A stretch of DNA of 63,955 bases, counting the filler, from Reticulomyxa filosa (lineage: Eukaryota; Protista; Foraminifera): assembly GCA_000512085.1 (NCBI GenBank). It is 16 parts of 16 records of this genome, joined end to end, with 100 filler letters (N's around TTAATTAATTAA, not from the genome) between each part and the next. Parts side by side here need not be neighbours in the genome. Positions count along the whole stretch, not along the records: positions 1 to 12,386 come from ASPP01011787.1; 15 more parts are not named here. One strand, written 5' to 3'. Below the pieces are notes generated by a model. That model was not told where the DNA came from, ran no database searches, and worked only from the letters and a program-made list of their open reading frames with translations. Of this stretch, positions 1 to 17,650 are shown piece after piece (positions within the stretch are counted from its first letter, which is position 1; each line of letters starts with the position of its first letter). Position numbers and translations under genes: made by a program.

Positions 1-723
1 ACAGTGGTTGTTATGGACGCAACTGGCTCCATGTCTCATTTGCTACAAAAGGCCAAAAACGCAGTTTGCACAATGTTTGAACGAATTGCGACTATTTTAA
101 AGGGACACGGTTTATCTTCCAATAGTTTCGAAATACAATTTGTGGTATATCGAAATTACAATGCACCTGAAGATATACTTTTGCAAGTTTCCCCATGGGA
201 ATCAAAACCTGACAAATTGCGCAGTTTTATGGAAACTGTGAAACCATGTTATGGAATTGATTCTGAAGCTGTTGAAGTCGGGTTAGCCCATGTTAACAGA
301 GAACGTGCAAAAGACGGGGTTTCGCAGGTAATACTGATTGGTGACGCTCCGGCAAATGCCAAAAATGATGTAATTGCTTGGCGACAATCATCTTATCGAG
401 GAACAGAAAGTTCTGGTGCTGAATATTGGAGAAAAACGAAGTTATTCTCCAGCCCGACATATTATGAAGAAGAACTTACAATCTTAAAACAATACAATAT
501 CCCTGTGCACGCTTTTTATGTGGAAAGACAGGCAAAAGAAAATTTTGAAGCAATAGCTCGTATTTCAGGTGGTCGGTGTGCGGAATTAAAGATTAATTCA
601 GATGAAGGATCAGATCAATTAACCAACGTAGTTTCTGAGGAAGTCCTTAGAAATGCTGGTGGATCGAAAGGAAGCGCACTTGTTGATGCTTACCGAGCCA
701 AATTTTCTAAAGCACACGTTTAA
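1..723 (+). CDS. vWA (von Willebrand A) domain; probable C-terminal part of the giant GTPase-SecA protein that runs off the other end of this contig
   Basis: Reads TVVVMDATGSM (DxTxS MIDAS-type), FVVYRNY, EAVEVGL and VILIGDAP, ending at TAA 721-723. It is open from base 1. Bases 1-10 (acagtggttg) equal bases 12377-12386 in the same reading frame. Confidence 0.85.
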   Translation, partial: TVVVMDATGSMSHLLQKAKNAVCTMFERIATILKGHGLSSNSFEIQFVVYRNYNAPEDILLQVSPWESKPDKLRSFMETVKPCYGIDSEAVEVGLAHVNRERAKDGVSQVILIGDAPANAKNDVIAWRQSSYRGTESSGAEYWRKTKLFSSPTYYEEELTILKQYNIPVHAFYVERQAKENFEAIARISGGRCAELKINSDEGSDQLTNVVSEEVLRNAGGSKGSALVDAYRAKFSKAHV

Positions 724-1249
724 CAAAGTACATAAAGTGTAAAGAGTATAAAATTATCAAGCGTTGATGTTGATGATTTATTCAAATTTTCACAATAGAA
801 AACAAAAGCAAGCTATCCCGATAACAACAAAAATACAATTCAGTATTTCTTTTTATACCAGCTGATTCATTTCAAATAATTGTCGCTACAGATGATTTCG
901 TATTTTGCATTTTGATAATCTAACATCAATTTCTCGCTCTTTTACACAAAGTAAAAAGAATTTCAAATACGATAATTTGTAAGCTTCACTCCTTTCTGGA
1001 GCTTTTTCGTCTTTATTTGTTGCATTAATAACACAGAAAACAGTCTGAGATGGAAATAAAAATAATAAACAAAAATTGGATTTGAATTTTAAATGGAAAT
1101 TAGAATTAATCAAAGAGTTTGACAAACGTGTCCGCAAGAAATTCACTGGACAAATATACTGCCTAAAATATAGTAAAATGTATTGTATGTTAAATCTTTT
1201 AAATTGTTAAAAATGTTACAAGGGAAAGAAGTGATTTATTTAGCGTAAA

Positions 1250-1750
1250 TTTTTCACCAGATAGGCGAATGTTGTTTTGTAATTGCTAGACAAGACAGTT
1301 AAAATATAGGACTCATGCCAAGCAAATTCAAAATTTCACTGGTTTATGGATTGGGTGTATATACAAGAGTTTTCACGCAATGCAATAATTTGGCTTCATG
1401 TTCAGCAGATCAAATAATTCGATTGTTGGATGTAAAATTATGAAGAGAAATAACGAAATTTGAAGGATATTATAGGCTAGTATGTCATGAAAATTGCTCC
1501 CTGATGGTAAAATTATTGCATCTTGTTCAGATGATGTACAATTTGTTGGTGTGATGTGAACGCTAGAAAAGGTATATAGAAATCAAAGGTCATCATGCTT
1601 ATATACTAGGAATAGATATAATCAAATGGCAATACTATTGTATCATGTTCAGTTGCATGTCAATGAATAATTCGACATTACAATGATATTTATTAATGCA
1701 AAAAGCACAGACAATAAATCTGTTATTGGTATGATACATCTCTCACTGAC
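1250..1750 (+). pseudogene. Highly degraded WD40-repeat relic
   Basis: Fragments such as ASCSADQIIRLLDV and IASCSDD are interrupted by stops and frameshifts. Boundaries are approximate. Confidence 0.6.
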
Positions 1751-3448
1751 TAGAGCTCCTTTTCTGTTTTAGGAATAGTTGGAGGAGAAACACAAAAACT
1801 GCACAATTATACAATAGTTCATGAATTTGTTGCATGAAGCTGTTGTTGTGCTATCTCTTTGTACATTACAATAATCATCGCAAAATATTCCATGTTGTAC
1901 CGTTGCCTTGTTAATTTGGCAGTCACTACCAATAATCTGAAAGCATATGAAAAAAGTACTTAGTACGTTTTCCCATTTCAAAGAATTTTGGTTGGCCATA
2001 TAATTTTTTTAAGGTAAATCTAATTATATAATTGTTCGTTTAAGTGATATATACTTCATCAAAATTGTCAATTGTGGTACTGTCACCCAAAGGTTCAGCG
2101 TTTAATATTGGAACATGCATATTAAAAAAAATTTGCACAAATTAATGTTTTTCACTGATACAAGAAGTTATTGCTTTGTCAACAACTAAAGTACTTGCGT
2201 TTTCTCTAACGGCGATTTAATCGACACGGAAAAGCATTCACATTTGTTTATCTGCTTTTGAAAAATGAAAGTATGTTAAATTTCGCTTTTAAAATAAGTA
2301 GGAGAATATCTTAAACTGTAGCACATTTTTTTAGCAATATTTTTTATAAGCATAGTTCGCAGATGTTTATTTAGATTATTTTTTTTATGAAGAATCAACT
2401 ATTTCTATAATGTGAAATTTTAGATTTGAACTTTATTTCTTATTTTAACTGTTTTAGAAAAAAACAAAATCAAACTTTAACAATTCTTTCACATTTTTTC
2501 ACAAACACATTTTTAGACATCAAGATGCACAGATATCACTTTAAAAACTTTGAATAATTATTCTTTCATTTTTTTTTTACAAAACAATGCAAACTAATTC
2601 AAGTGTTACACAATTTTCATCAATTCTGCTTGCATTGTTCAAAGGATGTCATTTGAGAATCTGATATTTGAATATGTGTTAATAAAAACATAATCATTTA
2701 TTGTTAATTTAAAACAATTCATTCTGCTCCAAAAAAAAAGTTTTCACAAAATTACTGGATTATTGTTCCTTTATCCCTTTAATTTTCCATTTGTATTTGC
2801 CAGTTGCTTACCATTCTTGTGCATCAATCAAAAACAAGAATGGTTGATTCATTTCTTTTAAACAAAAAAATAGAGTAGATCCAAAAAAAATATATATAAT
2901 TCAAATAAAACACAAAAGGATAAGCATTTTGAAATTCAACCTGACTACACACTTTTGTGTTATGCTGTTTTGACTTGGTTACGGTAAATTTTTCTTGGTT
3001 GGTTGTTTTTTTTTGCTTTAGAGTTTTCTGCACATTTTTAAAAAATTAAACCATTTGTTTTCATCCTCAAATAACGTTTATCGTTAAAAAAAAAGACGTC
3101 TTCAAGATTTTAAACTCACTCGAAATTAAGATATCGTTTATCATGATATAACGACAGAACAATGTGAAAACAAACAAATTTAAGATAAATCCTAGACATT
3201 ATTAAATCACACAACCATTCCTGTCGATATTTGAGAACAGTTCTTCCGAACTAAAAAAAAGGGTATTCCACAACACCAAAGTGTAGTGCTGCTTTTTTTT
3301 TTCTTTTTGTATTGGAGGAATTGACTTTCCATTCTGTACGTTCTTAACCAAACAAAAGCAGAAATGGTTTGTCTTTTTAGTTGCAAAAAAAAAAATGGAG
3401 TGGATCCAAAAAAATTACACCTAACAAAACACAAAGGACAAGCACTTT

Positions 3449-3715
3449 GTGATTGAATCCTATGGAGAAGAAACAGCAATATTTAAGGCAACTGGGTTGC
3501 GCAATGATGGAAGGATGCTAGACAACTCAAAAGAAAGCAACTGGGAAGGGTTGTTGAATACAATCAAAGAGAAGTTCCATCTGACAACCAACTCCTCGTT
3601 TCTTTTAGTAAAAAAAGATAACATTGATGATCATGTCGACAATGATGATGACCTATTTGATCTTTGGAATGTACTTATTAAAGATAAAAAGGCAACATCC
3701 TATACATTAAAAATG
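3449..3715 (+). CDS. 5' exon of giant GTPase-SecA-vWA gene; first PB1/ubiquitin-fold-like module
   Basis: The ORF is followed by a phase-0 GT...AG intron (3716-3790, 75 bp) that joins in frame to RCLEITKEG at 3791. It contains W..L...IKEKF.L ... VDNDDDL..LW. The true start codon is unresolved. Confidence 0.6.
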
Positions 3716-3790
3716 GTGTGTATGACTTCTCTCTTTAAAAAAACAAATAAATAGAAACAATACAGTATTAATAAACAATAAAAAAAATAG

Positions 3791-6400
3791 AGATGTTTGG
3801 AAATAACAAAAGAAGGCAAGAAAATAGAGTGGTGTCCAAAAGGATCGACTGACCCACAGTTTTATGGTGCAATGGAACAGCAAGACTGGACACAAATTTT
3901 TGAAGATCTAAAACGATTAATTGGACTGTCAGACAGTGAATATTTAGAGAATGAAAATCAAAATAATAAAATAGAGACTGCAGATGACTTGAAAAGTATT
4001 TGGGCTGATCGATATGACGAACATGACAGCGATAAATGGTATTTGAGACTTCAAGTCAATCCAAATTCTCTAAAGGAAACTGTAGCGAGTCCAGGAGTTG
4101 AGGGAGGTATAACTGCACAAGCTCATAGGGAAAAAAGTGAAGAGAAGGAGCAAGATAATGAAGATTCCAAGATAGCAGATAGCAACACAGCCAATCTTAA
4201 AAATGACAGCAACAACACAAAAAGAAGTGACAAAAGAGAGGAGAAGAAAGGAGATAAAACATCCGATGAAGACAAATCAAAAAAAATACAACAATCACAA
4301 GAGGTCAACGACGAAGAAGACGAAAAAAAAGAGACAATAAACAAACCAATTCAAAGAAATGAGCATTTTGACATAAAATTGATGTTGGAGTTGGTAAAAA
4401 AGGCAGAAGAGGCAGCAGACGCAATTAAAGATCAAAATGTGGTATTGCTGTTAGGAGGCACTGGAGCTGGAAAATCAACATTAATTCATTTTCTGGCCGG
4501 ATCAACCATGGAGAATCTAATTGTAGATGGGAAGCCCCATATAGCTCCAGTGAAAGTCAAAAATAAAGCATTGGCTAATGTTCGTACAAGTGCAAAAGCA
4601 ACATCCGAGACACGATATATTACGGCTGTTCCCATCAATTTAAAAGGAATGGGTCTGCTTGTGGACATAGATAGTGTTGTTCTTTGTGACACACCTGGAT
4701 TTGAAGACACAAGTGGTCCTGAAGTCGATGTTGCAAATGGCCTTGGAATCATTCGAGCATTACAAAATAGTAAAAGTGTCAAACCTGTGGTGTTGATTTG
4801 TTACACTGCTCTGGGTTATCGAATGAACTGTGTCAAGGAATTGGCCCGTACACTCGTGTCCATTATTCCATCCATCGAAAATCATCTTACTTCATTCTCG
4901 TATGTATTTACCAAACTACCCAAAGAGCAAAAAGAGTATATGCATTCGTTGGTGAAGGATACTTGGATAAGTGTGAAAGACGAGCCAGATGAGGGATTCA
5001 AAGCCATTTTGAAGGACATTGCCAAAAAAACAAAAAATGTTGTGATCGCACCAAATTTAGTGAGTGACTCACCAGATTCTTTGCTGGAGCGTCTTGCCGA
5101 TATAAAGGATTTCATTAAGAATCCTGGAGAGGTCTTTCAACCTTTTGTTTCTGAAAGTTCCAAAGGGGCAGTCCAAATGCAAGTGCAGAAACACAAAGAA
5201 AATATTTGGTTGGCTTATCAAAATGAAGATTATAATGTTGCTAAAACAAAGTTGGATGAACTCACAGACCTAAATAATGTGTTGAAACTTCCAACAATTG
5301 AAAATGAATACAAGGATATTGTGACAAAGTTGACCAATGAATGGAACAAAAAAAGTGAAAATGCCAAATCGATGTTCAACGAACGTATTGCATCTCCACA
5401 TCTAAGCAAAAATGATGTGTTGGCTTATCAGAAAGTCGTAAATGAACTTGTTTCTGCAAAGGGATTACGAAATCATTTGAAAGATGCAATTTGTGGCGAG
5501 TGTTTAATTCAAAATATCAATCAACAAATGCAACATTTGATTAATGCAATTGAAGATCAAAAGGAAGGGGACGAAAGCGCATTACAATCTCATTTGGATA
5601 AAATTTCACAAGTGCAGGCCTGTTTCCCTGATTTTAGTAGTTCTTACAACGAAGCTTGTCAAAAATTGAAAAAAAGAGTCGTAAAGTGTGCGGATGAAGC
5701 AAGAGAATGCATTAAAAAGAATAAATTTATGGAGTTTCGAAAAGAGTTAGAGAAGATTGGAAAGATTTTAATTCTTCAAGAACATCTTCGTTCTCTCATA
5801 GATATCAAGAAAGAGATCAAAGATTTGGAAAATGAATTATTAGTTTATCTCAATAATATTGCAGATGAAGGGCACGCCGTATTGAAAAAAGTAATTAAAG
5901 AAGAGTCTACTCCAACAAAAGGGGAAAAAGAAGGTGAAGGAGAAAAAGTTGAAATAGTTAATGTTCGAATTGAAAAACTCGACAAAACTGCTGTCGATAT
6001 CTTGAAAAGAGCATTTCCTCTCTTGGAGGAAGCAGCAAATGCATTTGACTTGCCTTATGAACATGTTGGACTTGACAAGTCGACAAAAGAGTTGGTTCGT
6101 TCGTTTGTAAATCAAATGATTGGATATTTTGAAAAAGTTAGACAAAAGATTGCATACCTTTTTGAAAAGCAAAGATATCAAGCATTTGATGAAATTAAAA
6201 AATTTATTTTGGTGATGGACGAGCTTCGAACCATAGAAGCCGTAAAACAAAGAACAGGAAGTCAGTATTTTCAAACTATCGAAAAGATATTTGGTTTTGT
6301 GCGTGATGTCCAAAAAGCATTGACACAATACTTAACTCTCTCAATAAGCCAAACGTATCTTTTGATTACAATCGATTGTACGAATGCGTCTTGTGTATAA
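3791..6400 (+). CDS. Giant protein part 2: second PB1-like module, acidic linker, TRAFAC-class P-loop GTPase (AIG1/septin-like), helical region
   Basis: G1 GGTGAGKS (~4454-4477), switch-I SET, G3 DTPG (~4688-4699) and G4-like VFTK are present. An apparent 1-nt frameshift near 6317 continues the frame as ...IDTILNSLNKPNVSFDYNRLYECVLC. Confidence 0.8.
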   Translation, partial: RCLEITKEGKKIEWCPKGSTDPQFYGAMEQQDWTQIFEDLKRLIGLSDSEYLENENQNNKIETADDLKSIWADRYDEHDSDKWYLRLQVNPNSLKETVASPGVEGGITAQAHREKSEEKEQDNEDSKIADSNTANLKNDSNNTKRSDKREEKKGDKTSDEDKSKKIQQSQEVNDEEDEKKETINKPIQRNEHFDIKLMLELVKKAEEAADAIKDQNVVLLLGGTGAGKSTLIHFLAGSTMENLIVDGKPHIAPVKVKNKALANVRTSAKATSETRYITAVPINLKGMGLLVDIDSVVLCDTPGFEDTSGPEVDVANGLGIIRALQNSKSVKPVVLICYTALGYRMNCVKELARTLVSIIPSIENHLTSFSYVFTKLPKEQKEYMHSLVKDTWISVKDEPDEGFKAILKDIAKKTKNVVIAPNLVSDSPDSLLERLADIKDFIKNPGEVFQPFVSESSKGAVQMQVQKHKENIWLAYQNEDYNVAKTKLDELTDLNNVLKLPTIENEYKDIVTKLTNEWNKKSENAKSMFNERIASPHLSKNDVLAYQKVVNELVSAKGLRNHLKDAICGECLIQNINQQMQHLINAIEDQKEGDESALQSHLDKISQVQACFPDFSSSYNEACQKLKKRVVKCADEARECIKKNKFMEFRKELEKIGKILILQEHLRSLIDIKKEIKDLENELLVYLNNIADEGHAVLKKVIKEESTPTKGEKEGEGEKVEIVNVRIEKLDKTAVDILKRAFPLLEEAANAFDLPYEHVGLDKSTKELVRSFVNQMIGYFEKVRQKIAYLFEKQRYQAFDEIKKFILVMDELRTIEAVKQRTGSQYFQTIEKIFGFVRDVQKALTQYLTLSISQTYLLITIDCTNASCV

Positions 6401-6723
6401 ATCAGTCGGAGTGGGTTGACGAACGTCAGGAAGATGGCAACAGCAATTTGAAGGAAACAGTAAAACAAAAGTTGACATTGCATTTACATGAATTACAACA
6501 ATCGAGTCAAGAATTTGAACTCGATTTAGATCATCCTGAACTTCTCAAAGAAGCTCGTAATATCTTCACCCATCTTGGAAATTTGCGTCGTTTGGACGTG
6601 GTCATTCCAGAATTGGCTCCTTTTCGTCAAAAGGTGAGTATCCCATTGGAAAAATCGGTGCGAGCCACATTGGCCACAATTCGTCGTGAATTTGCATTGA
6701 ACACAAAATGTGCCAAATTATGA
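6376..6723 (+). CDS. Giant protein part 3: helical segment between two apparent frameshifts
   Basis: It overlaps both neighbouring long ORFs, with similar composition. The second shift is in an A-run near 6705-6710 (LNTK / NVPNYEK). Confidence 0.65.
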   Translation: MYECVLCINQSEWVDERQEDGNSNLKETVKQKLTLHLHELQQSSQEFELDLDHPELLKEARNIFTHLGNLRRLDVVIPELAPFRQKVSIPLEKSVRATLATIRREFALNTKCAKL

Positions 6724-9700
6724 AAAAATGAGAGAAGAGTTGATCCGGCTCAAACCATGTGCAGAAAGTATTCAAAATGCCAATTCATACCTGCAGAAAG
6801 AGACGTTTAAGAATGTGAAAGACCTTGACTCCAAAATTAATACAATCAAAGAAAAATTAACCAACATTGAGGCTACGTTTAAATCAAAATGTCAACCGAT
6901 TGCAAATAAGATACAAACAGCCGAGGAAAAAATTTCACACTTGGAAAATCTTAAACAAGAGTATGGGAAAATGAATTCCAAGTCACTGTTGGATTCTTTG
7001 TTCTCATCAGATAACAAAGCAATAAAAAATTTGAGTGCACAAGGATATAAATCAATAGAAGCTGTAGAGGAGGATATTCGAAAAGAACAACAAAATTTGG
7101 AAAAGTTATCAGAAGAAGGAGCGAAAATCAAAGAAAGCCTTCAAGAGGAAGTGAAGGAATTAAAAGAAAAGCTGGACAAGGACGAACAAGTAAAGAAGGA
7201 ATATGAAGAACTATTACAAAAGGGAATGGAATCATTGCAAAGCATTACTGAATCATTAAAGAGCCATGGCTTTTTGGAAAGTGATGTGCAAAGATTAATT
7301 AATAATGAAAAAGAATTGAACGATAAAATTCGTCAATGCGAACGGGAACTTGCAAAATTAAAAAAAAATTCTGGATACACTTTTGAAGTGTTGAATGCCG
7401 CCAGAACTGCAAAAGTGTTGCAGTATTTGAAAGAGTGTAAAGCCACTGCCTTCCCTGTTGAAACAACAACAACAACAACAACAAATCAATCTGATAAAAA
7501 TGGCAATGAAAGTAGCAACAATGAGACGAAAGAGGATGAAAAAAAACAAACAGAGAATAGATCAGTAATCCCTCTGAGACAAGAAACCACAAACACATTG
7601 GATTTGGTGGAAGAATTTTTAAGAAAGTATTCCATCTTTGTTCAAAGTCAACTCAATTCTTTAAATTTTATTGAAAGTACAGCAACATTAGAAAATGACA
7701 ATGACAATATGGATATGATTGAGAAAGTTGAGAATATTCTCAACCAATTGACTGAAGTGCAGAAATTGCAAAAAGATTATCCAACGATATTTACACACTT
7801 TCCACAAGATATAATTGAACTATTTAACAAACGATTGAAACAGACTTATTTGAATCTTCACGATGAAATGATGAAATTAGCAGCCGTGGAGACAAGCACG
7901 AAACCGTTAAAAAAAAAAATAGCAGTAGCCAAAATATTGAGTGCATTGGATGATTTTGCCCAACCAAATAACAAATTTCGTGAATTGTTTGTAAAGTATC
8001 AAACGAAAATCTACGATGATGCAATTGACATCGAACCAATACTGGAAGCAATCAGAAAACATGAATATCCTACAATCGTTTCAGAATTGCTTCGCATTCA
8101 ACAAAATATTGACGATCCAAATGTAAAAAGAGCATACGGTAATGTTAGAGCCTCTTTGTCGCGCTTTTTGAACACTTTGGCCAGAACTACTTTGAGAAAA
8201 GTGTTTCTTCTGGGAGAGAATGATGTGGACTTAGATAAAGTGACAGAACTGATGGACAATCTAGAACAGATAAAAGATGCACAACAATTTGTTATCCAAT
8301 TTGTGGATGAAGTGACACAAAAAGAAATTGAAAGAACAGCAGACAAGACCAAATCTGCCATTGGGGGATGGATGGAAGGAGTGTTGGAAACATTTGATGC
8401 ATCCGTGAATGCTTTGAATTTTTTGGAAGCAGAAAAGAAAATTCGATTGGTTCGAAGAGTGGTACACATTTTAGGAGATTATTGTGATCCTGTTCCTTTG
8501 GATAGTTCTGGCAACAACATGACAAGGAAAGTAGAGGACAATGGAAAAGGGGAGACAGGTACAATCATAAGTCGCATCGATAAACTCGAGAAAAAAATTG
8601 AAGCCAAATTGAAAGGTATTTTAAATCGATATAAAAAAATTCAATTAGCTGGAAGCACATTCAATCCCTATTCTTCGTATCCACCCAGAGAAATTTATGC
8701 CAAGCTTGGCAAAGTTATGAGCGGGTGTGCAATGTACGAAGATACGTGGAGAGAAATTGAAGACGACATTATCCAAAAAATTCGAAATCAACTGGAGGAT
8801 GCTCGTGAGAAAGTAGGCACTTTACGTCCATGGGAAATGTTTGCTAGCGTTCGGCTTTGTAAGACAGTATTGAATGTTTTGCCCGACCATATGAAAAGCA
8901 CGCTTGAGGGAGAAATCAAAGAATGCGAACAAGATCTCGTATACGAAATGAATAATGCTGAAGAAACAGTATCAGAAGTGTTGAAGACAAGAGATGTAAA
9001 TGATATTAATCAATTCTTGGATAAATGTACACCCAATCAAAAAAAATTGGTTGAGATCCAAGTGGTTACAATGGCTCGAGGATATGCCACAGGAATGGAT
9101 CAGAAATTGGCTGACGGAAATACGGCTGAGGCATTAGGGAATTTGAAAGAGCTGCTTCATTTAAAAAATTCAATCAAAACAAAACCGATCGAGCTCGAGA
9201 ATCAATTTAAATCGACTAAAAGCAAATTTAACAATCATTTCGAAAAGACACAACAAGAGACAGTGACTGGTTTCGATGCATTGAGTCAGTGTAATTTTGG
9301 AGAAAATACCATCAATTGGATGGAAAAATCATTTGACTTTGTCATTCAATGCATGGACTTGAAGTTAGATTTGAAACAAGAAGCCAGTGAAGTAATGCCA
9401 CTCAATTTCGAAGAAAAAATCAAGGAAATGGATAGAAAGATCTTCTATTCTTTTACATCTTTGCAACAAAAATACAAAACCAATTTTGATCAGAACCATG
9501 CAGTAAATTTACGAAAAGTATTAGACACAGTGCAGACAGTGGGTGATGATAGTCCTTTCCGAAAGAAACTTGAAACGTTTAAACAAAAAATGAAATCTTG
9601 TGATATTCCTGAAGATCCAAGCACGTCCTCCGGTCTATGGACGTATTTAGAAGCGAAAGATACTCTCGATCACCAATTGGAAAATATGGTACAAGAGACA

Positions 9701-12386
9701 ATCAAAGAAGGGATTGTCAATGACACAACCAAGGCAAGCGATACGGAAAGAGATCAATTTTTTCAAAATTTGAAGAAAAAACTTATATTTATGGATCAAA
9801 TGTCTCAATGGAAAGTTCATGTCACAGATGGTAACAAATATCGGCAATATCAAAATCAAGTAGGAAGTGAAATAGATAATATTATTAAAAAAGTAAAAGA
9901 GATTACAAATTGGTCTCGCTCCGATTGTAGTAATCTCAATCATTACTACAAATGTTTCTTGTCCATGCAAAAACATTGCATTTTTCAAATCATTGCAAAA
10001 TCCCAATTTGAAGTTATTGAGTCCATGATAACCGAACGAGTCCAAAAATTGGAAAAAGACGCATCCAAAGGCCCAAATATTTTGGTGTCTTGCTTAATAG
10101 CAATGAAAACAATGTCCGTGCACCTGTTCGATTTTAAGGATACCATCAACAAAAGAATTGATGAATTATTGAGTGGTTACAAAAAAAAAACCAATAGTGG
10201 TATTAGTATTGCAACACTAGCAGCAAAATTAGAAGAAGATCAAAGTGGGATGGGTAAAATGATTATTTTTGAACATAGTGTGTTTAAAGGATACTCGATT
10301 GCGTTGTTCAATCAGAAAACTAAAGCACATGGAATTGACTATGTTTTGGAAAAGATTGAAGTCAAAAATGAAAAAATCGACACATCAAAATTGAAGGACA
10401 TGTATGAGGAATTTCATACAGCATACAATACATTTGTATTCAGCAATTTGGCCAAAGCCAAAGACGACCCAAAGCACCTCAATGTACTTGCGAATAATGC
10501 AAAACTGTGTGCTAACATTTCCAATCAAACACCAGGGGATGAACGCTGGGATGCAAATATTCGAAACAAAATCCCTGGAATAATGGCCAATATTTTTGCA
10601 CTGTGGACACTTCAACACGCACAATACTATCATGATGCAAAAGGCGTAGACGATCAAAAATCTTGTTTGGTACAACCACATCCAGCTCAAGTGATTTCCA
10701 TATTCCGCATGTTGGGTATTGAGGAAAACAAAACTGGATTGACAAATCACTTGATTCAAATTGGAACAGGAGAAGGAAAATCAGTGATTTTAGCGATCAC
10801 TTGTTGTGTTTTAGCATTATTCGGCTTTGATGTGAGCTGTACTTCGTACAGTGAATACTTGAGCAATAGAGATTTCAAAAGCTTTGAGCAATTATTTGAT
10901 ATCTTGGGTGTAATTGATCATATTCATTATGGCACATTCAATATGATTTGTGAAAGGATTATTAATGAAGGAGGTGATATGCGCAGACTAGTTGAAAATT
11001 TAATCCTTCCTGGAAATGATGATGAGAAAAAAGTTGATGATGTTTCTCGAACTGTTCGTTCAAAGATACTTTTAATTGATGAAGTCGATGTATTTTTCAA
11101 CAAAGACTTTTATGGAAGCTGCTATTCACCTGCAGTTACATTGAGACATGATACCATCACCAAACTTATTGATTTCATTTGGAATAATAAAAGGTCATTT
11201 TTGAAATTGAAGGATGTAAAACAATCCAATGAATACAAAGCATGTTGCAATATATTGAGAGGATGGGATTCATTGTTGGATGAAGCGATTAAAGATATGT
11301 TGAGCGCTGTTCAAAACTTTGAGTCTCATGGATATCAAGTGAGCAATGATAAAATTGGATACAAAGAACAAGATGGTATTTCTTACAATATTCGATATGG
11401 TTACAACACTTTATTTGCGTATTATCATGAGAATGCACAAAATAAAATCAGTGATGAAAGTTTAAAAAACAATATATTCCTTTCATTTCAAATTGGAAAT
11501 TTTTCTTATGCCGAGGTTCCCAAAAATTTCTATCGTATTATGGGTGTGAGTGGGACATTGAAAACGTTGAGTGCATCTGAACAAGAAGCAGTGGAGAAGG
11601 AGTATCATGTTTCCAAATATACTTACATGCCATCTTTGTTTGGTAAAAATCAATTAATCTTTGCAGAAAAAGCAGATATTTTTATTGCGGATAAAGACGA
11701 TTATTTCATTATTCTTAAAAAGGAGATTGGTGATCGACTTGTTGGGAAAACGCCAGAAACAAAGCGAGCTGTGTTGGTGTTTTTTGAAACCAAAAAACAA
11801 TTGATGGAATTTTATGAATCGCCACATTTTTCTCCAATTAAAGATGATACAATTGTAATGACTGAAGACAATTCGTTCACAGAGAAAGGATCTCTTATTA
11901 AGCGTGCCACCAGTTCTGGTCAAGTGGGGTTATTCACCAGAGCATTTGGAAGAGGAACAGACTTTATTTGTCGTGATGAAATTGTGGCTTCCAATGGTGG
12001 GCCACATGTGATTCAAACCTTCCTTTCTGAAGAGTTATCTGAGGAAGTGCAAATCAAGGGACGTACAGCCAGACAAGGAGAATCTGGTTCTTACAGTTTG
12101 GTGTTGTGCGACAAGTCACTTGAAAAATTCTCGATTACACAACAAGATATTCAAGATGCGCGTAATGCAGGCAACTTTTATCCAATGTTCAATGCAAAGC
12201 GAAGTGACTTCTTCAAAACTCAATACGCTGAGAACAAAAAATTTGTAGATTATGCTGCAAAAGAGCACAAATTGGGACAGAAACTGATTGCGGCGTTGAA
12301 GAGGAATAATGTAGCTGAGGTGAAGGGAATGTTATGTGAAAAAAACAAAGGAGCTGAAGAGGCTAAATCTTCACGAACAGTGGTTG
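6710..12386 (+). CDS. Giant protein part 4: coiled-coil/helical stalk followed by a SecA-like SF2 ATPase (both RecA lobes); open at the contig end
   Basis: SecA-collinear motifs: QPHPAQ, QIGTGEGKS, SEYLSNRD, IHYGTFN, LIDEVD, GVSGT, AVLVFF, TRAFGRGTDF, GGPHVIQT and QIKGRTARQGESGS (~10670-12110). There is no stop before the spacer. Confidence 0.9.
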
Positions 12387-13643: not shown

Positions 13644-15039
13644 TCATCCCCAAACACGAATTAAGCCGTTGTTTGAACCATAAAATAAATTAATATAGCT
13701 ATCACCATTTGATCTTTGTTCATTGTTATTTACCTTCTTTTTAAGTTTTATAAATTTAAGACATAATACTCCTTCATCTACTTTCATCACATATAATTCA
13801 TTTTTATTTGACCGAATATCCCAAAATCGAATTGTTTTATCAATTGATCCAGAACATATCACATTTGAATTACCACCAAAGTCACTATTCTCTATTACAA
13901 ATGGTGAATATTCAACATCCCATACGTAACTTGCGTGTCCATTGAACACTTGAATTTGTCGACCAGATCGAATTATCCCACAAACGAACACTTTTATCAT
14001 CTGATCCTGATAATATTGTATTTATTAATTCATTTGATCCATATTTTACACTCCTCACATAATGTTCATGTCCTTTGAACACATTCAATTGTTTGGCTGT
14101 TTCAATATTCCATATTCGAATAGTTTTATCATGTGATCCAGAACAAATTGTATATCCATTTCCACCAATTACACCAATATTATTACTTTTATTTCCATTA
14201 TTGTTATTATTGCTTTGTAATGGTGAAATATCAACACATTCAATACCATCTTCATGTCTATTGAAAACATATAATGTGTTGGATGTTTCAACATCCCATA
14301 AACGGATCGTTTTGTCCCATGATCCAGAACACAAATATCTACCACCGTTAAATGGTGAAAATTCAATACTACAAACATTCCATGTGTGTCCATTTAGTAT
14401 TTGTAATTGTTTATTATGTTTGAAATCCCAAAAACGAATGGTATTGTCGTGTGATGAAGAACATGTAACATTTTGGTGATGATTATGATAATGATATGAT
14501 GAAAATTTCACACAATTTACATTACTTGAATGTTCATTGAATGATTGAATTTGTTTGTCGTTATCAACATCCCATACACGAACTGTATTATCATTTGATC
14601 CAGAACAAATGAATTGACAACCATCAAATGTCGAACAATCAATACTATTTACACAATCTGTGTATTCAGTGAATGTTTTAAGTAATTTAGATGATAAGCG
14701 AAATGTATCAAGCATGAAAACAGCAGTTACCTGTGTCAAGTTATGATTATGGAGACAACAACTAAATATGGAATATTTTAACACTAAATGAAAGAAAAAA
14801 CAAATAAACTAAATATTTGATGACAAGTTTGTCGAATTCATGAATCCAGCCAAATTTGATGTGCAATATTCGAATCCAATGTCGTATAACTACTTGAACT
14901 TTTTTTTCAGACTGTTTTAATTACAAATTGCTTACAACAAATAGAACAAAAAAAAAGAAACAAACTTTCTAAAAGCTTGAATAAAGGTTACCAACGCTAG
15001 TGGAGTTAAAGTTTGCTTCCCATTGCTAAGAGTTGTCAT
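13644..15039 (-). pseudogene. WD40-repeat protein (three-exon family member), frameshifted
   Basis: Exon 1 is MTTLSNGKQ..., exon 2 (14813-14911) is SEKKVQVVIRHWIRILHIKFGWIHEFDKLVIKY, then about 7 WD repeats (CSGSxDxTIRxWD). There is an extra A near 13975 (tgggataattcg vs tgggatattcg), and the exon-2 donor reads TT rather than GT. Confidence 0.8.
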
Positions 15040-15239
15040 TTTTCAATTTCTTTGTTTTTTTGATTAAGATAGTATTTGATGACGTAAAATGGAAAATGAT
15101 TGAGCTTTTTTCATCAAGAACAATGAAAGGGGCTCAACACGAAAGACTGAGTTTAACAGATTTCATAATTATGAAATAAAACCAAAATCAAAACCTTATT
15201 TAAAGATAGCATAGTAAACAGATTCATAATTGTGCTTCT

Positions 15240-15510
15240 TACTATATTTTATAATGATTTTATCAAAATCATCGATCCATCCTAATTTCGTCTTTAAAGC
15301 TCAAGTCAATATTGAACAATAAATTTATTTCATTTTTTGACTGTATTATTTATTATTTATTATTTTCAATCAGTTTCATACAATACAATTTATTTGTGTT
15401 TTATTAATAAATAAATAAATCATTACCAACAGTGAAGATCCCATACACGCACTTTTGTCTTCATGTGAGTTGATAATGTGGTATATTTATCATCAATGAT
15501 GTGTATATGA
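15240..15510 (-). pseudogene. 3' remnant of a Kelch-repeat family gene
   Basis: STHMKTKVRVW plus an intron plus a frameshifted ...KLGWIDDFDKIIIK match the 3' end of the Kelch gene at 49152-50429. Confidence 0.65.
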
Positions 15511-15793
15511 TTGACGCAATGTACTTGAAATTGTCCCCTTAACCGCATCGTTGTGAAAATACAAGCATGGAAACATTTACACACAAAACGTGTTCAATGA
15601 ATCCGAAGAAGAAAAAGAAGAATTGAGCAAACAAAAAAAGCACTAAAATTGTTGAAAGCTTGATGCATACACCATACTATCATAACTTTCAAAGTTTAAA
15701 CGATTTCTCCACTCCACTTGCTAAATTTGTTCTCATCGAGAAAGAAACATTTCAGAGTGCTTTTAAAAAAGATTTAAAAAAAAAATCAAACAA

Positions 15794-17650
15794 TTAAGTA
15801 AGTGGAAGCAATGATGGAAGCACTTGACAATGAAAAATATTAGTGTCAAAATAAAATTGAACCCAATTTTGATCAATGTCTTTAAAATGTTGAATAAGTT
15901 TGGGAAATTGCGAATTATAAAATTGATAAAAATAGGATCTTTCGCTTAAATTGAGACATAATTGAAAATAAGTGTGATTGGTTAATGCGTCACGACGAAA
16001 ATAAGCCCCTTTTTGAATTTTGTCAATTTTTGCTTTGGAAACAAGAGATTGTTCGACTGCAATTCCATTTAATACTTCATCATGTGGAACTTTTAATTGT
16101 TTGGAAAGTAGCTTCATCAATTCGACATGACTGGGAATGTCAACCAGCGGAGAAGAAGAAGATACATTTGATGATTTTTTACCCATCACTTTGTTTAAAG
16201 GTTCATTCACCATGTTTTCATAGCCACTCTTTTGTTGATGATCACGTCTTTGATTAAATACAAAACTCTTACCTTCTTGCTTACGAAACCATTCATAAAG
16301 AGTATTTCCCAAACGAATTCGATATCCAACATTATGACTTCTCAAATAACAATTATTTGCATCTGTTTGGACTGGACGGTATGGCCAATTTTTTATAATT
16401 GATGATATATCCTTATTACAAGGAGAGATATTATGTGATGGCTGATCACACCAATACAAATGTTTCATGCTCACATTGTTATCACTATCTCTTAATTTGG
16501 TTGCAATTTTGACATAATTAATCAGCCATTTCTTATATTCATTGATATTTGCAGTATTCCATCGAAAATATGAAACAATATAAGGTTGTATTAATTCGGA
16601 ATTATTATCATTATTTATTGATACAATCTTTGGATGAAGCGTTTTGGACGGAACTGTATTCATCCATCGATTATCAATCCGTATTACAATAGCATCAACT
16701 GTTTTACACAAACTTAAATAAATACAATGACCATCATGACCAACTACCAAACTCATTTCACAACATTCATTTGATGATGTTGGTTGTAAATCCATTAAAC
16801 GGTCTACTACATTCTCACTCCAATCATCAATGAGATATGAAAATTTGTATTGAAATTCTTGTGTTGTGATATAATCCCAATAAGTTGTCAATTGCACTTG
16901 CAATTCTTGTATTCCTTTTTCATACACTTGCTTAAGTGTTATCTGTCTTGGCAATCCAATGTAATTTTTTCCTTCTCGTTTCAAACGAACACATATTTCA
17001 AATAATAAAAATATTCGACAAATTAGAAATCGTCTTGGATCCCATCCTTCATCAAATCTTTTTTGATTTGAATTTTCAAACTCTATCGCTTTAATATTCC
17101 TACGAGCCGCCCAATACAATGAACTACCATTGATTAATATCTCTTGTAAGTCTTTTTGATTTATTCCTAATAAAAAACTCGCACCTTCTTGTAATAATAT
17201 CTCATAACTTTCTTCATCAACAACTTTGGTGACACCATCTCCATCAATTAATTTATCTTTAACATAATCAATTGAATACTCAATTTGTTTCATTGGATAC
17301 ATTGTCCTTTTTTTCAATATCCATTTACACATTTCTTTCATTTCTAAATATTCTTTTTCATTTTCTTTATGTTTCTCTTTTTGAATGAATTCCATAATAT
17401 ATTCAAGTGGAGTATGTGAAGTAATTGCATCAATAGCGCCTTCTCTAAAATCAATCCATGCACCTTGCTCAATACAATAACGAGCAGCCTTCCAATGTCT
17501 GTTATTTATCGCTAAATGCAATGGAGTTTGTCCATATTCATTCAATGAATTATTAATATTCATAGAATGATTTTCCAATGCAGATTTTAGTTGTGTCACA
17601 TCACCTAATTGTGCAGCTTCATGAACAGTGACGTAAGGACCTTTGATTGT
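15794..17650 (-). CDS. Ankyrin-repeat protein with a putative cysteine-peptidase domain (His-Asp-Gln-Cys order)
   Basis: The ORF is 601 aa. N-terminal VHEAAQLGD and YGQTPLHLAINNRHWKAARYCIEQGA are ankyrin repeats. The later region has VGHDGHCIYL...IRIDNR...PVQTDANNCYL. The 5' end is unresolved. Confidence 0.7.
   Translation of the reverse strand, partial: TIKGPYVTVHEAAQLGDVTQLKSALENHSMNINNSLNEYGQTPLHLAINNRHWKAARYCIEQGAWIDFREGAIDAITSHTPLEYIMEFIQKEKHKENEKEYLEMKEMCKWILKKRTMYPMKQIEYSIDYVKDKLIDGDGVTKVVDEESYEILLQEGASFLLGINQKDLQEILINGSSLYWAARRNIKAIEFENSNQKRFDEGWDPRRFLICRIFLLFEICVRLKREGKNYIGLPRQITLKQVYEKGIQELQVQLTTYWDYITTQEFQYKFSYLIDDWSENVVDRLMDLQPTSSNECCEMSLVVGHDGHCIYLSLCKTVDAIVIRIDNRWMNTVPSKTLHPKIVSINNDNNSELIQPYIVSYFRWNTANINEYKKWLINYVKIATKLRDSDNNVSMKHLYWCDQPSHNISPCNKDISSIIKNWPYRPVQTDANNCYLRSHNVGYRIRLGNTLYEWFRKQEGKSFVFNQRRDHQQKSGYENMVNEPLNKVMGKKSSNVSSSSPLVDIPSHVELMKLLSKQLKVPHDEVLNGIAVEQSLVSKAKIDKIQKGAYFRRDALTNHTYFQLCLNLSERSYFYQFYNSQFPKLIQHFKDIDQNWVQFYFDTNIFHCQVLPSLLPLT

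Follow-up and report, generated by a model that had tools for sequence, protein, structure and literature searches.

A SecA-derived ATPase within a giant, strongly expanded GTPase-VWA protein family of the foraminiferan Reticulomyxa filosa, with a possible role in host-microbe conflict

To describe the gene RFI_15929 of Reticulomyxa filosa and its relatives, we analyzed a 63,955-nucleotide (nt) stretch of DNA (the window) that joins 16 parts of this genome, and its first part is the 12,386-nt contig C11787 (ASPP01011787.1; GC content 25-40%) from an assembly of 101.9 Mb in 50,809 contigs. A single plus-strand gene runs from about position 3449 to the end of this contig at 12386 and is deposited in GenBank as a partial "hypothetical protein" of 2,840 amino acids (aa; RFI_15929, P0152 in our protein set). 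Its coding sequence within the window amounts to ~2,950 aa, and the ~235-aa von Willebrand factor A (VWA) tail found in relatives would bring it to ~3,190 aa, in line with an earlier note, made from the sequence alone, that had described a giant multidomain gene at this place. The spliced protein was concatenated only for length and composition, while exons and frame segments were searched separately. From the N terminus, two small modules are followed by a P-loop GTPase, a long region low in proline and glycine, and an ATPase module derived from SecA (Table 1). RFI_15929 belongs to a family of ~3,000-aa cytosolic proteins that has expanded strongly in this genome, in part as tandem arrays.

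The ATPase of this family is SecA-derived; it is neither an ordinary DEAD/DEAH helicase nor a canonical SecA. The module consists of N-terminal helices, a first nucleotide-binding domain (NBD1), an insert, a second such domain (NBD2) and a long helix (~12170-12300), and the SecA motifs follow each other in the expected order, as the earlier note had read them: Walker A GTGEGKS at 10763, DEVD at 11078, motif III GVSGT at 11543, motif V GRGTD at 11948 and motif VI GRTARQG at 12059. Pfam SecA_DEAD (PF07517) is matched at 33 bits, above its cut-off of 24.6, and is also found in all 43 relatives scanned. When the 662 residues of the window were compared with PDB sequences by phmmer, every match at E<=1 was a SecA, with both lobes covered, and a profile built from 64 family members retrieved 24 SecA/SecA2 chains at E 8e-16 to 1e-8, as against 5e-6 for the best DEAD-box protein (Mss116). 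Its alignment with several Bacillus subtilis SecA chains is unbroken, with profile positions 115-569 on SecA residues 96-543. From DEVD to motif III, an interval that had been described as short, there are 151 aa, as many as in SecA, and this insert has the place and rough size of the PPXD, the preprotein cross-linking (substrate-binding) domain of SecA.

Structure prediction gave the same assignment. We used the 82%-identical paralogue P0153 (residues 925-1815), chosen for having the SecA module and the VWA in one verified open reading frame (ORF), and obtained a model with a mean pLDDT of 89.5. In a Foldseek search the first 36 matches of this model were all SecA (E 5e-19 to 7e-11), and VIA placed SecA from the SecY complex at Z 30.2 over 540 aligned residues at ~15% identity, compared with Z ~21 over ~325 residues for the best DEAD-box proteins. 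The same 540 residues stand against ~380 aligned to the PPXD-less motor 3bxz, a comparison of length only, so that a PPXD-like nature of the insert is only suggested by the aligned length of the model. Beyond NBD2 the model shows a 42-residue helix (590-631) and one short helix, and the VWA begins at 655, ~25 residues past the post-NBD2 helix, with no wing domain and no C-terminal tail; the Pfam wing/scaffold model SecA_SW matches 0 of 43 members. The absence of a SecA-type C-terminal scaffold, pointed out earlier, is borne out by the model and by the 43 members scanned, and extends to the two-helix finger and the C-terminal SecB/zinc tail.

The distance from canonical SecA is large. The NCBIfam SecA model (PRK09200) gives 41 bits against a cut-off of 862 and the SecA2 models give 32-36 bits against 725-1085, far from equivalog level, and a quick maximum-likelihood tree sets the family apart from canonical SecA on a very long branch with an SH-aLRT support of 100. 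The window falls inside a clade of all sampled eukaryotes in that tree, in which eukaryotes were drawn mainly from the window's close relatives and several branches are long. Profile, fold and tree agree with the SecA origin of the motor that the earlier note had proposed, and the family is best described as a variant of the SecA kind rather than as SecA in the functional sense.

Table 1 Features of contig C11787 (positions 1 to 12,386 of the window)
Feature	Position	Strand	Basis or remark
C-terminal VWA-like domain (TVVVMDATGSM...), most likely of another family copy	1..723	+	stop 721-723; ~240 residues
Spacer between tandem copies	724..3448	no strand	AT-rich, GC 25-32%
Frame 2 open	3425-3751	+	ORF scan
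Exon 1, ~89-aa module, weakly PB1-like (beta-grasp)	3449..3715	+	Pfam PB1 below cut-off; 5' end provisional
Intron 1	3716-3790	+	GT..AG, 75 nt; in-frame stops 3752, 3779, 3788; used in GenBank model
Second N-terminal module and charged low-complexity linker	3791..4288	+	BLASTP against exon 1, E 0.049
Frame 2 open	3791-6397	+	ORF scan
P-loop GTPase, GIMAP/Toc34-like predicted fold	4289..5200	+	AlphaFold2 model, Foldseek, motifs
Middle region, ~1,731 aa, low Pro/Gly, holds both frame breaks	5201..10399	+	composition
Frame 1 open	6307-6720	+	ORF scan
1-nt deletion relative to four paralogues	6317 (approx.)	+	AAAAAG-CATTGA against AAAAAGACATTGA; frame 2 to frame 1; frame 2 stop at 6398
Frame 2 open	6701 to contig end	+	ORF scan
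1-nt excess in A run	6705 (approx.)	+	4 A against 3 or 6 A in three paralogues spanning the site; frame 1 to frame 2
SecA-derived ATPase module	10400..12386	+	Pfam, profile, fold, motifs

The GTPase domain retains the motifs G1 (GGTGAGKS, 4454-4477), the G2 threonine in SETR (4604) and G3 (DTPG, 4688-4699), all invariant among 82 homologues, and the intact motifs reported earlier were thereby borne out. The AlphaFold2 (AF2) model of window 4289-5200 (pLDDT 92.6) has a predicted TRAFAC GTPase fold with G1, G2 and G3 in place. Its best Foldseek matches in the PDB are GIMAP7, GIMAP1, GIMAP5 and GIMAP2 and Toc34/Toc33 at 11-17% identity and E 1e-6 to 1e-4, and the first 50 matches range over E 1e-6 to 5.5e-4 and template modeling (TM) scores of 0.37-0.58. 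Pfam returned only weak P-loop GTPase matches in this region, RsgA_GTPase and MMR_HSR1 best and both below cut-off, and AIG1 did not match the domain. The suggested GIMAP/AIG1 affinity hence survives at the level of predicted fold, but not as membership by sequence, given the missing AIG1 match and a G4 aspartate that is not conserved.

A GTPase homodimer was predicted with GTP and Mg included in the job, in a setting whose calibration did not cover ligands. The interface score (ipSAE) reached 0.71 against 0.00 for the best control, with at least 67% contact agreement between runs and a partner pLDDT of 81. When the tool was calibrated, 21 of 30 proteins with a solved pair structure came up to the mark and 0 of 23 known as single chains did so; eukaryotic pairs passed in 17 of 29 cases, but those lacking an older solved relative in just 1 of 7. 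The predicted interface comprises the P-loop, switch I/II and the G4 side, like the G-dimers of GIMAP and septin type. The oligomerization that had been proposed for the GTPase is consistent with this model, subject to a reservation about solved relatives that is weighed below.

The flanking regions of the GTPase are less distinct. The exon-1 module matches Pfam PB1 at E 0.01 and 16.2 bits, below the cut-off of 23.6, and has at least 71 matches in the genome; it occurs in at least 70 places, each time just ahead of a GTPase exon. The second module (~100 residues), which resembles it faintly, has no Pfam match. A beta-grasp/PB1-like nature of both units may be put forward with low confidence, and the PB1-like N terminus of the earlier note is retained in this weak form only. 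The middle region contains 5.3% proline plus glycine and 50% E/K/Q/L/I/N; it gave no Pfam domain, an Atlas feature search had no usable match, and a PADLOC scan returned only weak P-loop and coiled-coil matches, the middle region resembling weakly the coiled-coil-type LmuB. It is presumably helical, as judged from composition, which makes the helical reading of the earlier note plausible.

The VWA domain raises the question of where the gene ends. RFI_15929 is cut by the contig end at ...SSRTVV, exactly the SecA/VWA boundary of its relatives, and the contig begins and ends with the same 10 nt, through which the two ends join in frame and in the order seen in paralogues. On C196 a single ORF continues from the SecA module into a tail with 68% identity to the VWA-like sequence at window 1-723, which Pfam VWA_4/VWA_2 match weakly. 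The earlier note had attached this domain to the gene across the two contig ends; the in-frame join and the presence of a VWA in the family architecture stand, but the VWA at 1-723 most likely belongs to an upstream tandem paralogue, because the short contig C41520 links a VWA 96% identical to window 1-415 with a SecA tail only 80% identical to 12054-12386. On the simplest reading of these sequences, the contig breaks at a k-mer shared by many paralogues. A circular contig, or a collapsed single unit in which VWA 1-723 would be part of RFI_15929, was rejected as the likeliest reading on the evidence of C41520. Tandem copies are seen directly on C3559.

Across the family the VWA has a conserved DxTxS...D motif, in which DxTxS and the later aspartate are invariant or nearly so, as compared with DxSxS...T...D in a standard VWA metal site. 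VWA Pfam families are matched by up to 15 of 43 members, and the VWA of the P0153 model finds the VWA folds of CMG2 and TFIIH p44 in Foldseek at E ~1e-6. One tandem copy on C3559 has, after its SecA module and VWA-like tail, a further VWA-like ORF immediately downstream (VWA_2, E 5e-5; 14797-15342 and 15626-16315; locus L014).

The reading frame of this copy is interrupted in ways that bear on whether it is alive. Intron 1 carries all three in-frame stops that separate the first two open segments, and the layout of ~89-aa module, gap of 75-120 nt and GTPase exon recurs on at least 10 other contigs; for these two reasons we accept it, as the sole intron that the sequence comparison supports. 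Two further introns of the deposited model (GenBank introns 2 and 3) were rejected, since at these places the paralogues run on collinearly with an open frame, from which the window departs by -1 and +1 nt, 388 nt apart. At the first site four paralogues (C5526, C44836, C18458 and C25345) read AAAAAGA[C/T]ATTGA, where the window reads AAAAAGCATTGA. Over 6150-6850 one frame is open in all four paralogues, whereas the window is stopped in all three frames. The closest paralogue, C5526, aligns with window 2592-6988 in one alignment at 91.6% identity, and from 3449 to 6988, away from the frame changes, the indels between them are 6 nt (within intron 1), 3 nt at 3925 and 3 nt at 5932; upstream of 3449, in the spacer, they are of any length and not multiples of three. 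The gene is therefore intron-containing, as had been stated, in respect of intron 1, but what shifts its frame at the two later sites is a gain or loss of one base compared with the paralogues. The deposited model spans these two indels with two introns, and its fourth "intron" cuts 18 conserved residues (SLVLCDKSLEKFSITQQD) after motif VI (window 12059-12200) although the ORF is open.

This copy is either mis-sequenced or a recent pseudogene. The 1,892 codons beyond the second frame change are fully open with every catalytic motif intact, which points to sequencing error or very recent decay. If RFI_15929 were a dead or dying pseudogene, translation would stop at the frame-2 TAA (6398), and this locus would yield no fusion of GTPase and SecA module. 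Such decay would fit the stretch that is stopped in three frames where four paralogues are open, other genomic copies that are plainly decayed (5-14 stops), and the lack of an in-frame ATG ahead of the first domain: an in-frame TAA lies at 3422 and the first in-frame ATG, at 3515, lies inside the first module, whereas in two less closely related paralogues an ATG precedes this module by 6-10 codons. Yet the intact paralogue C5526 likewise has no upstream ATG, one of the two indels affects an A run, as sequencing errors typically do, the assembly is highly fragmented, and the long open stretch downstream speaks against decay. We regard the death of this copy as a serious minority prospect and lean against it.

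The relation to C5526 changes along the gene, from 91.6% identity (2592-6988) to 79.5% (7175-12379) with a switch near 7000-7175, and such mosaic identity suggests gene conversion or recombination between copies. Of the spacer, the stretch ~2522-3448 is conserved with paralogues. Within it, segment 2522-2941 is kept at 73-88% in C5526, C3559 (13390-13821) and C17292 (3219-3460), and on C17292 its equivalent directly adjoins the exon-1 module; the segment, whose indels are not multiples of three, could be a promoter or 5' untranslated region, or a decayed 5' exon. A dispersed repeat at window 1037-1655 has at least 40 matches at 65-86% identity on contigs without family genes. No tRNAs or tandem repeats were found in the window. 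Bacterial contamination was rejected as a source of the gene, given the low GC content, the short intron kept in at least 10 paralogues and the dozens of copies across the assembly.

The expansion in this genome is extensive, with at least 70 copies. The SecA module has at least 73 matches and the GTPase exon at least 105, both lower bounds, several of them with multiple stops, and GTPase and SecA modules are collinear and 6-7 kb apart on at least 7 contigs. The copies diverge to 60-80% identity with their frames conserved.

Outside the genome, the family comprises 898 cluster representatives at E<=1e-30. Named relatives occur in bdelloid and monogonont rotifers, Hydra vulgaris, Arcella, several Tetrahymena (43-46% identity) and a metagenome-assembled genome (MAG) of a gammaproteobacterium. 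The survey of architectures showed the same order of GTPase, helical region, SecA module and VWA in full-length proteins of Adineta, Hydra, Tetrahymena, Brachionus and the gammaproteobacterial MAG, in keeping with the layout first read from the window. Among 248 fetched family proteins, 126 match the GTPase query and 211 the VWA query, and in most of these 211 the VWA match begins within 1-2 residues of the end of the SecA match. The N terminus is more variable: 87 scanned extensions included a U-box in three proteins, a RickCE-like deubiquitinase in two, and a C2 domain and ankyrin repeats in one each. An alignment of 87 family N termini displays a motif MPxCxEKxL ahead of the GTPase in many members, which is not seen in the window's copy. 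In one protein from a Logan assembly (P0202; 2,649 aa) the GIMAP-like domain is replaced by a jacalin lectin and a GBP GTPase, while the SecA-like module and the VWA behind them are those of the family.

In a scan of species genomes, bacterial carriers were found in Legionellales, other Gammaproteobacteria, Chlamydiae, two Wolbachia and a few MAGs of other phyla. One carrier gene sits in an ordinary bacterial neighborhood on a 216-kb contig, and within one bacterial order the gene is present in 3 of 86 genomes. The carriers also have a normal ~900-aa SecA beside the giant gene, and PF07517 separates the two clearly, with 427-441 bits for their canonical SecA and 35-45 bits for the giant ORFs nearest the window's family. 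A third class, with 100-138 bits, is formed by ~3,900-aa ORFs of a Wolbachia (L064; G002:C6:122347-123714) and a gammaproteobacterium (L070; G004:C5:2858536-2859237), which branch between canonical SecA and the window's family; they are a separate giant SecA-like subfamily, probably of the wBol1_1092 type. The 1,509-aa Wolbachia relative recovered here has no VWA. No relative was found in a scan of IMG/VR.

The family is already present in databases and in the literature on horizontal gene transfer, and a description of the GTPase-SecA-VWA architecture was not found there; the literature searched held no paper on this architecture and none that tests the function of the family. Two eukaryote-like secA genes of 4.5 and 11.8 kb are described in Wolbachia wBol1-b in the parts of Duplouy et al. 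2013 (PMC3639933) used here, with insect proteins as full-length matches and Tetrahymena, Polysphondylium and Salpingoeca as matches of the secA domain. The same parts place a eukaryotic clade apart from prokaryotic SecA, infer transfers into Wolbachia and Amoebophilus, and state that annotated introns of eukaryotic secA genes mostly appear spurious (PMC3639933). Bordenstein and Bordenstein 2016 (PMC5062602) list SecA, in the portion used, among the eukaryote-like domains of the eukaryotic association module of phage WO, with "secretion" as a guessed role. Going by these portions, wBol1_1091/1092 and their insect, Daphnia, Tetrahymena and Polysphondylium homologues are genes of the same giant kind, with a SecA domain nearer the eukaryotic one, and they share with our family both the transfer to intracellular bacteria and the spurious introns (PMC3639933, PMC5062602). 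RFI_15929 has the features of that group, namely a very long ORF with a SecA domain that clusters among the giant proteins of eukaryotes, away from prokaryotic SecA. What the two papers treat, in the portions used, is a case of horizontal transfer and the secA domain only, and they offer no mechanism beyond "secretion".

The comparison with known systems is informative on both sides. Like SecA and SecA2, the family motor has two RecA-like lobes with SecA-type motifs, an interval between Walker B and motif III equal in length to the PPXD-bearing one of SecA and a long post-NBD2 helix, and SecA is its best match by sequence, profile and fold; unlike them, it shows ~15% identity and 41 bits where 862 are required, has neither a SecA_PP_bind or SecA_SW match nor a wing or C-terminal tail, and forms part of a cytosolic eukaryotic protein together with a GTPase, ~1,700 residues of presumed helix and a VWA. 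The GTPase shares with GIMAP/AIG1 and Toc34/Toc33 the top structural matches, intact G1-G3 and a predicted nucleotide-face homodimer, but at TM scores of only 0.4-0.57 and with the sequence differences given above. Midasin/Rea1, a giant protein, and the MoxR-VWA pairs follow a similar logic, in that a motor driven by ATP works with a VWA whose metal site binds a protein ligand. The family motor is of superfamily 2 (SF2)/SecA type and not AAA+, and homology is limited to the VWA fold, so that these pairs serve as an analogy only. Large immune GTPases (GBPs, IRGs and GVIN) are lineage-expanded multi-copy genes whose products act on pathogen compartments. The P0202 variant, with its GBP GTPase and jacalin lectin, resembles them, but the GTPase subfamily differs in almost all family members, and we know of no large immune GTPase with a SecA-like motor or a VWA.

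We propose that the family is a dimerizing protein-remodeling machine used in host-microbe conflict, a reading to which we give about an even chance. The GTPase would dimerize or oligomerize across its nucleotide site in a nucleotide-dependent manner and so concentrate the protein on a target surface, the VWA would hold a protein ligand through its metal site, and the SecA-like lobes, with their insert and long helix, would grip a polypeptide and pull or unfold it at the expense of ATP. Such a machine would follow the motor-plus-MIDAS (metal ion-dependent adhesion site) logic of midasin or the MoxR-VWA pairs, with no secretion through SecY. It would act in the conflict of phagotrophic and aquatic eukaryotes with intracellular microbes, and the copies captured by Legionellales, Chlamydiae and Wolbachia might serve as effectors or mimics.

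The conflict role, like the defense against engulfed or intracellular microbes that the earlier note put forward, is suggested by copy number, pseudogenes, tandem arrays, mosaic paralogues, swapped N termini (ubiquitin-system, lectin and membrane-binding modules and the GBP swap) and repeated capture by intracellular bacteria; the case is circumstantial, and taken by itself this role is evenly balanced between true and false. The specific extraction mechanism is a doubtful part of the proposal. Doubtful to the same degree is its most explicit form, a widespread and hitherto overlooked class of eukaryotic innate-immune machine whose GTPase would assemble the protein on an intracellular microbe or its vacuole, whose VWA would seize a microbial surface or effector protein, and whose channel-less SecA motor would extract or unfold it, bacteria having captured copies as decoys or effectors, in Wolbachia via phage WO.

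Several observations weigh against the proposal. Expansion and horizontal transfer fit other roles as well, and the PADLOC defense models gave no convincing match. The G4 position reads FTK (4907) and its specificity aspartate is not conserved, so the GTP specificity is putative. The dimer prediction may reflect memory of solved dimers, since its interface is like that of the GIMAP/septin-type G-dimers. The insert is not recognizable as PPXD by sequence, with 0 of 43 members matching SecA_PP_bind (PF01043). Bacterial lineages are basal in the quick tree, which bears on the direction of transfer between eukaryotes and bacteria. Finally, the reading frame of the copy studied here is broken twice, and its first domain is not preceded by an in-frame ATG.

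Other roles can be set against the same data. The family could do housekeeping work in the membrane or cytoskeleton dynamics of large phagotrophic cells, such as vesicle or reticulopod remodeling, independently of microbes and with the GTPase as a membrane scaffold. GTPases of GIMAP, Toc34 and septin type do scaffold on membranes, the predicted fold matches them here, and both the C2 domain of one relative and the long helical region would suit such work; a housekeeping protein would, however, hardly have so patchy a phyletic spread with no one-to-one orthologues evident among the fetched relatives, dozens of divergent copies and pseudogenes per genome, copies captured by intracellular bacteria, or a variant with GBP and jacalin. 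We consider this role unlikely.

It is quite improbable, in our estimate, that the SecA-like module acts on nucleic acid as an SF2 helicase or translocase, for example in sensing or remodeling foreign RNA or DNA: although its next-best fold matches are DEAD-box proteins, DinG and UvrB, and Helicase_C matches 38 of 43 members and DEAD 11 of 43, sequence and profile matches favor SecA by ~10 orders of magnitude, the alignment to SecA is ~200 residues longer than that to helicases, and the 151-aa insert sits at the PPXD site of SecA. The gene might also be the cargo of a mobile or selfish element, its copy number the result of transposition rather than selection, as the many and partly decayed copies and the dispersed repeat in the spacer could suggest; domain searches of the gene, however, gave no transposase, integrase or reverse transcriptase, the copies keep their frames although they have diverged to 60-80% identity, the repeat lies on many unrelated contigs away from family genes, and the IMG/VR scan gave no relative, so that we rate this as very improbable. 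The SecA descent and the conserved motor motifs would suit a true protein-translocation ATPase that serves a channel of SecY/Sec61 type in the membrane of an organelle or symbiont, but we give this reading next to no credence: the motor lacks the SecA wing and C-terminal tail, the VWA following directly on the post-NBD2 helix, its score is far below the NCBIfam cut-off, the module is embedded at residue ~2,300 of a giant protein, and carrier bacteria retain their normal SecA.

The core of a secretion motor is thus found inside a giant cytosolic protein, with hundreds of diverged copies in protists, rotifers, cnidarians and their intracellular bacteria. For annotation, two "introns" of RFI_15929 are artifacts that mask single-base indels. 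If the family is indeed a defense or remodeling machine, it would represent a new type of motor in eukaryotic innate immunity, would explain the recurrent "eukaryote-like SecA" cargo of Wolbachia phage WO and Legionellales, and would provide a test case for a polypeptide translocase re-used without its channel. Tetrahymena and Hydra carry members, which makes the family experimentally tractable.

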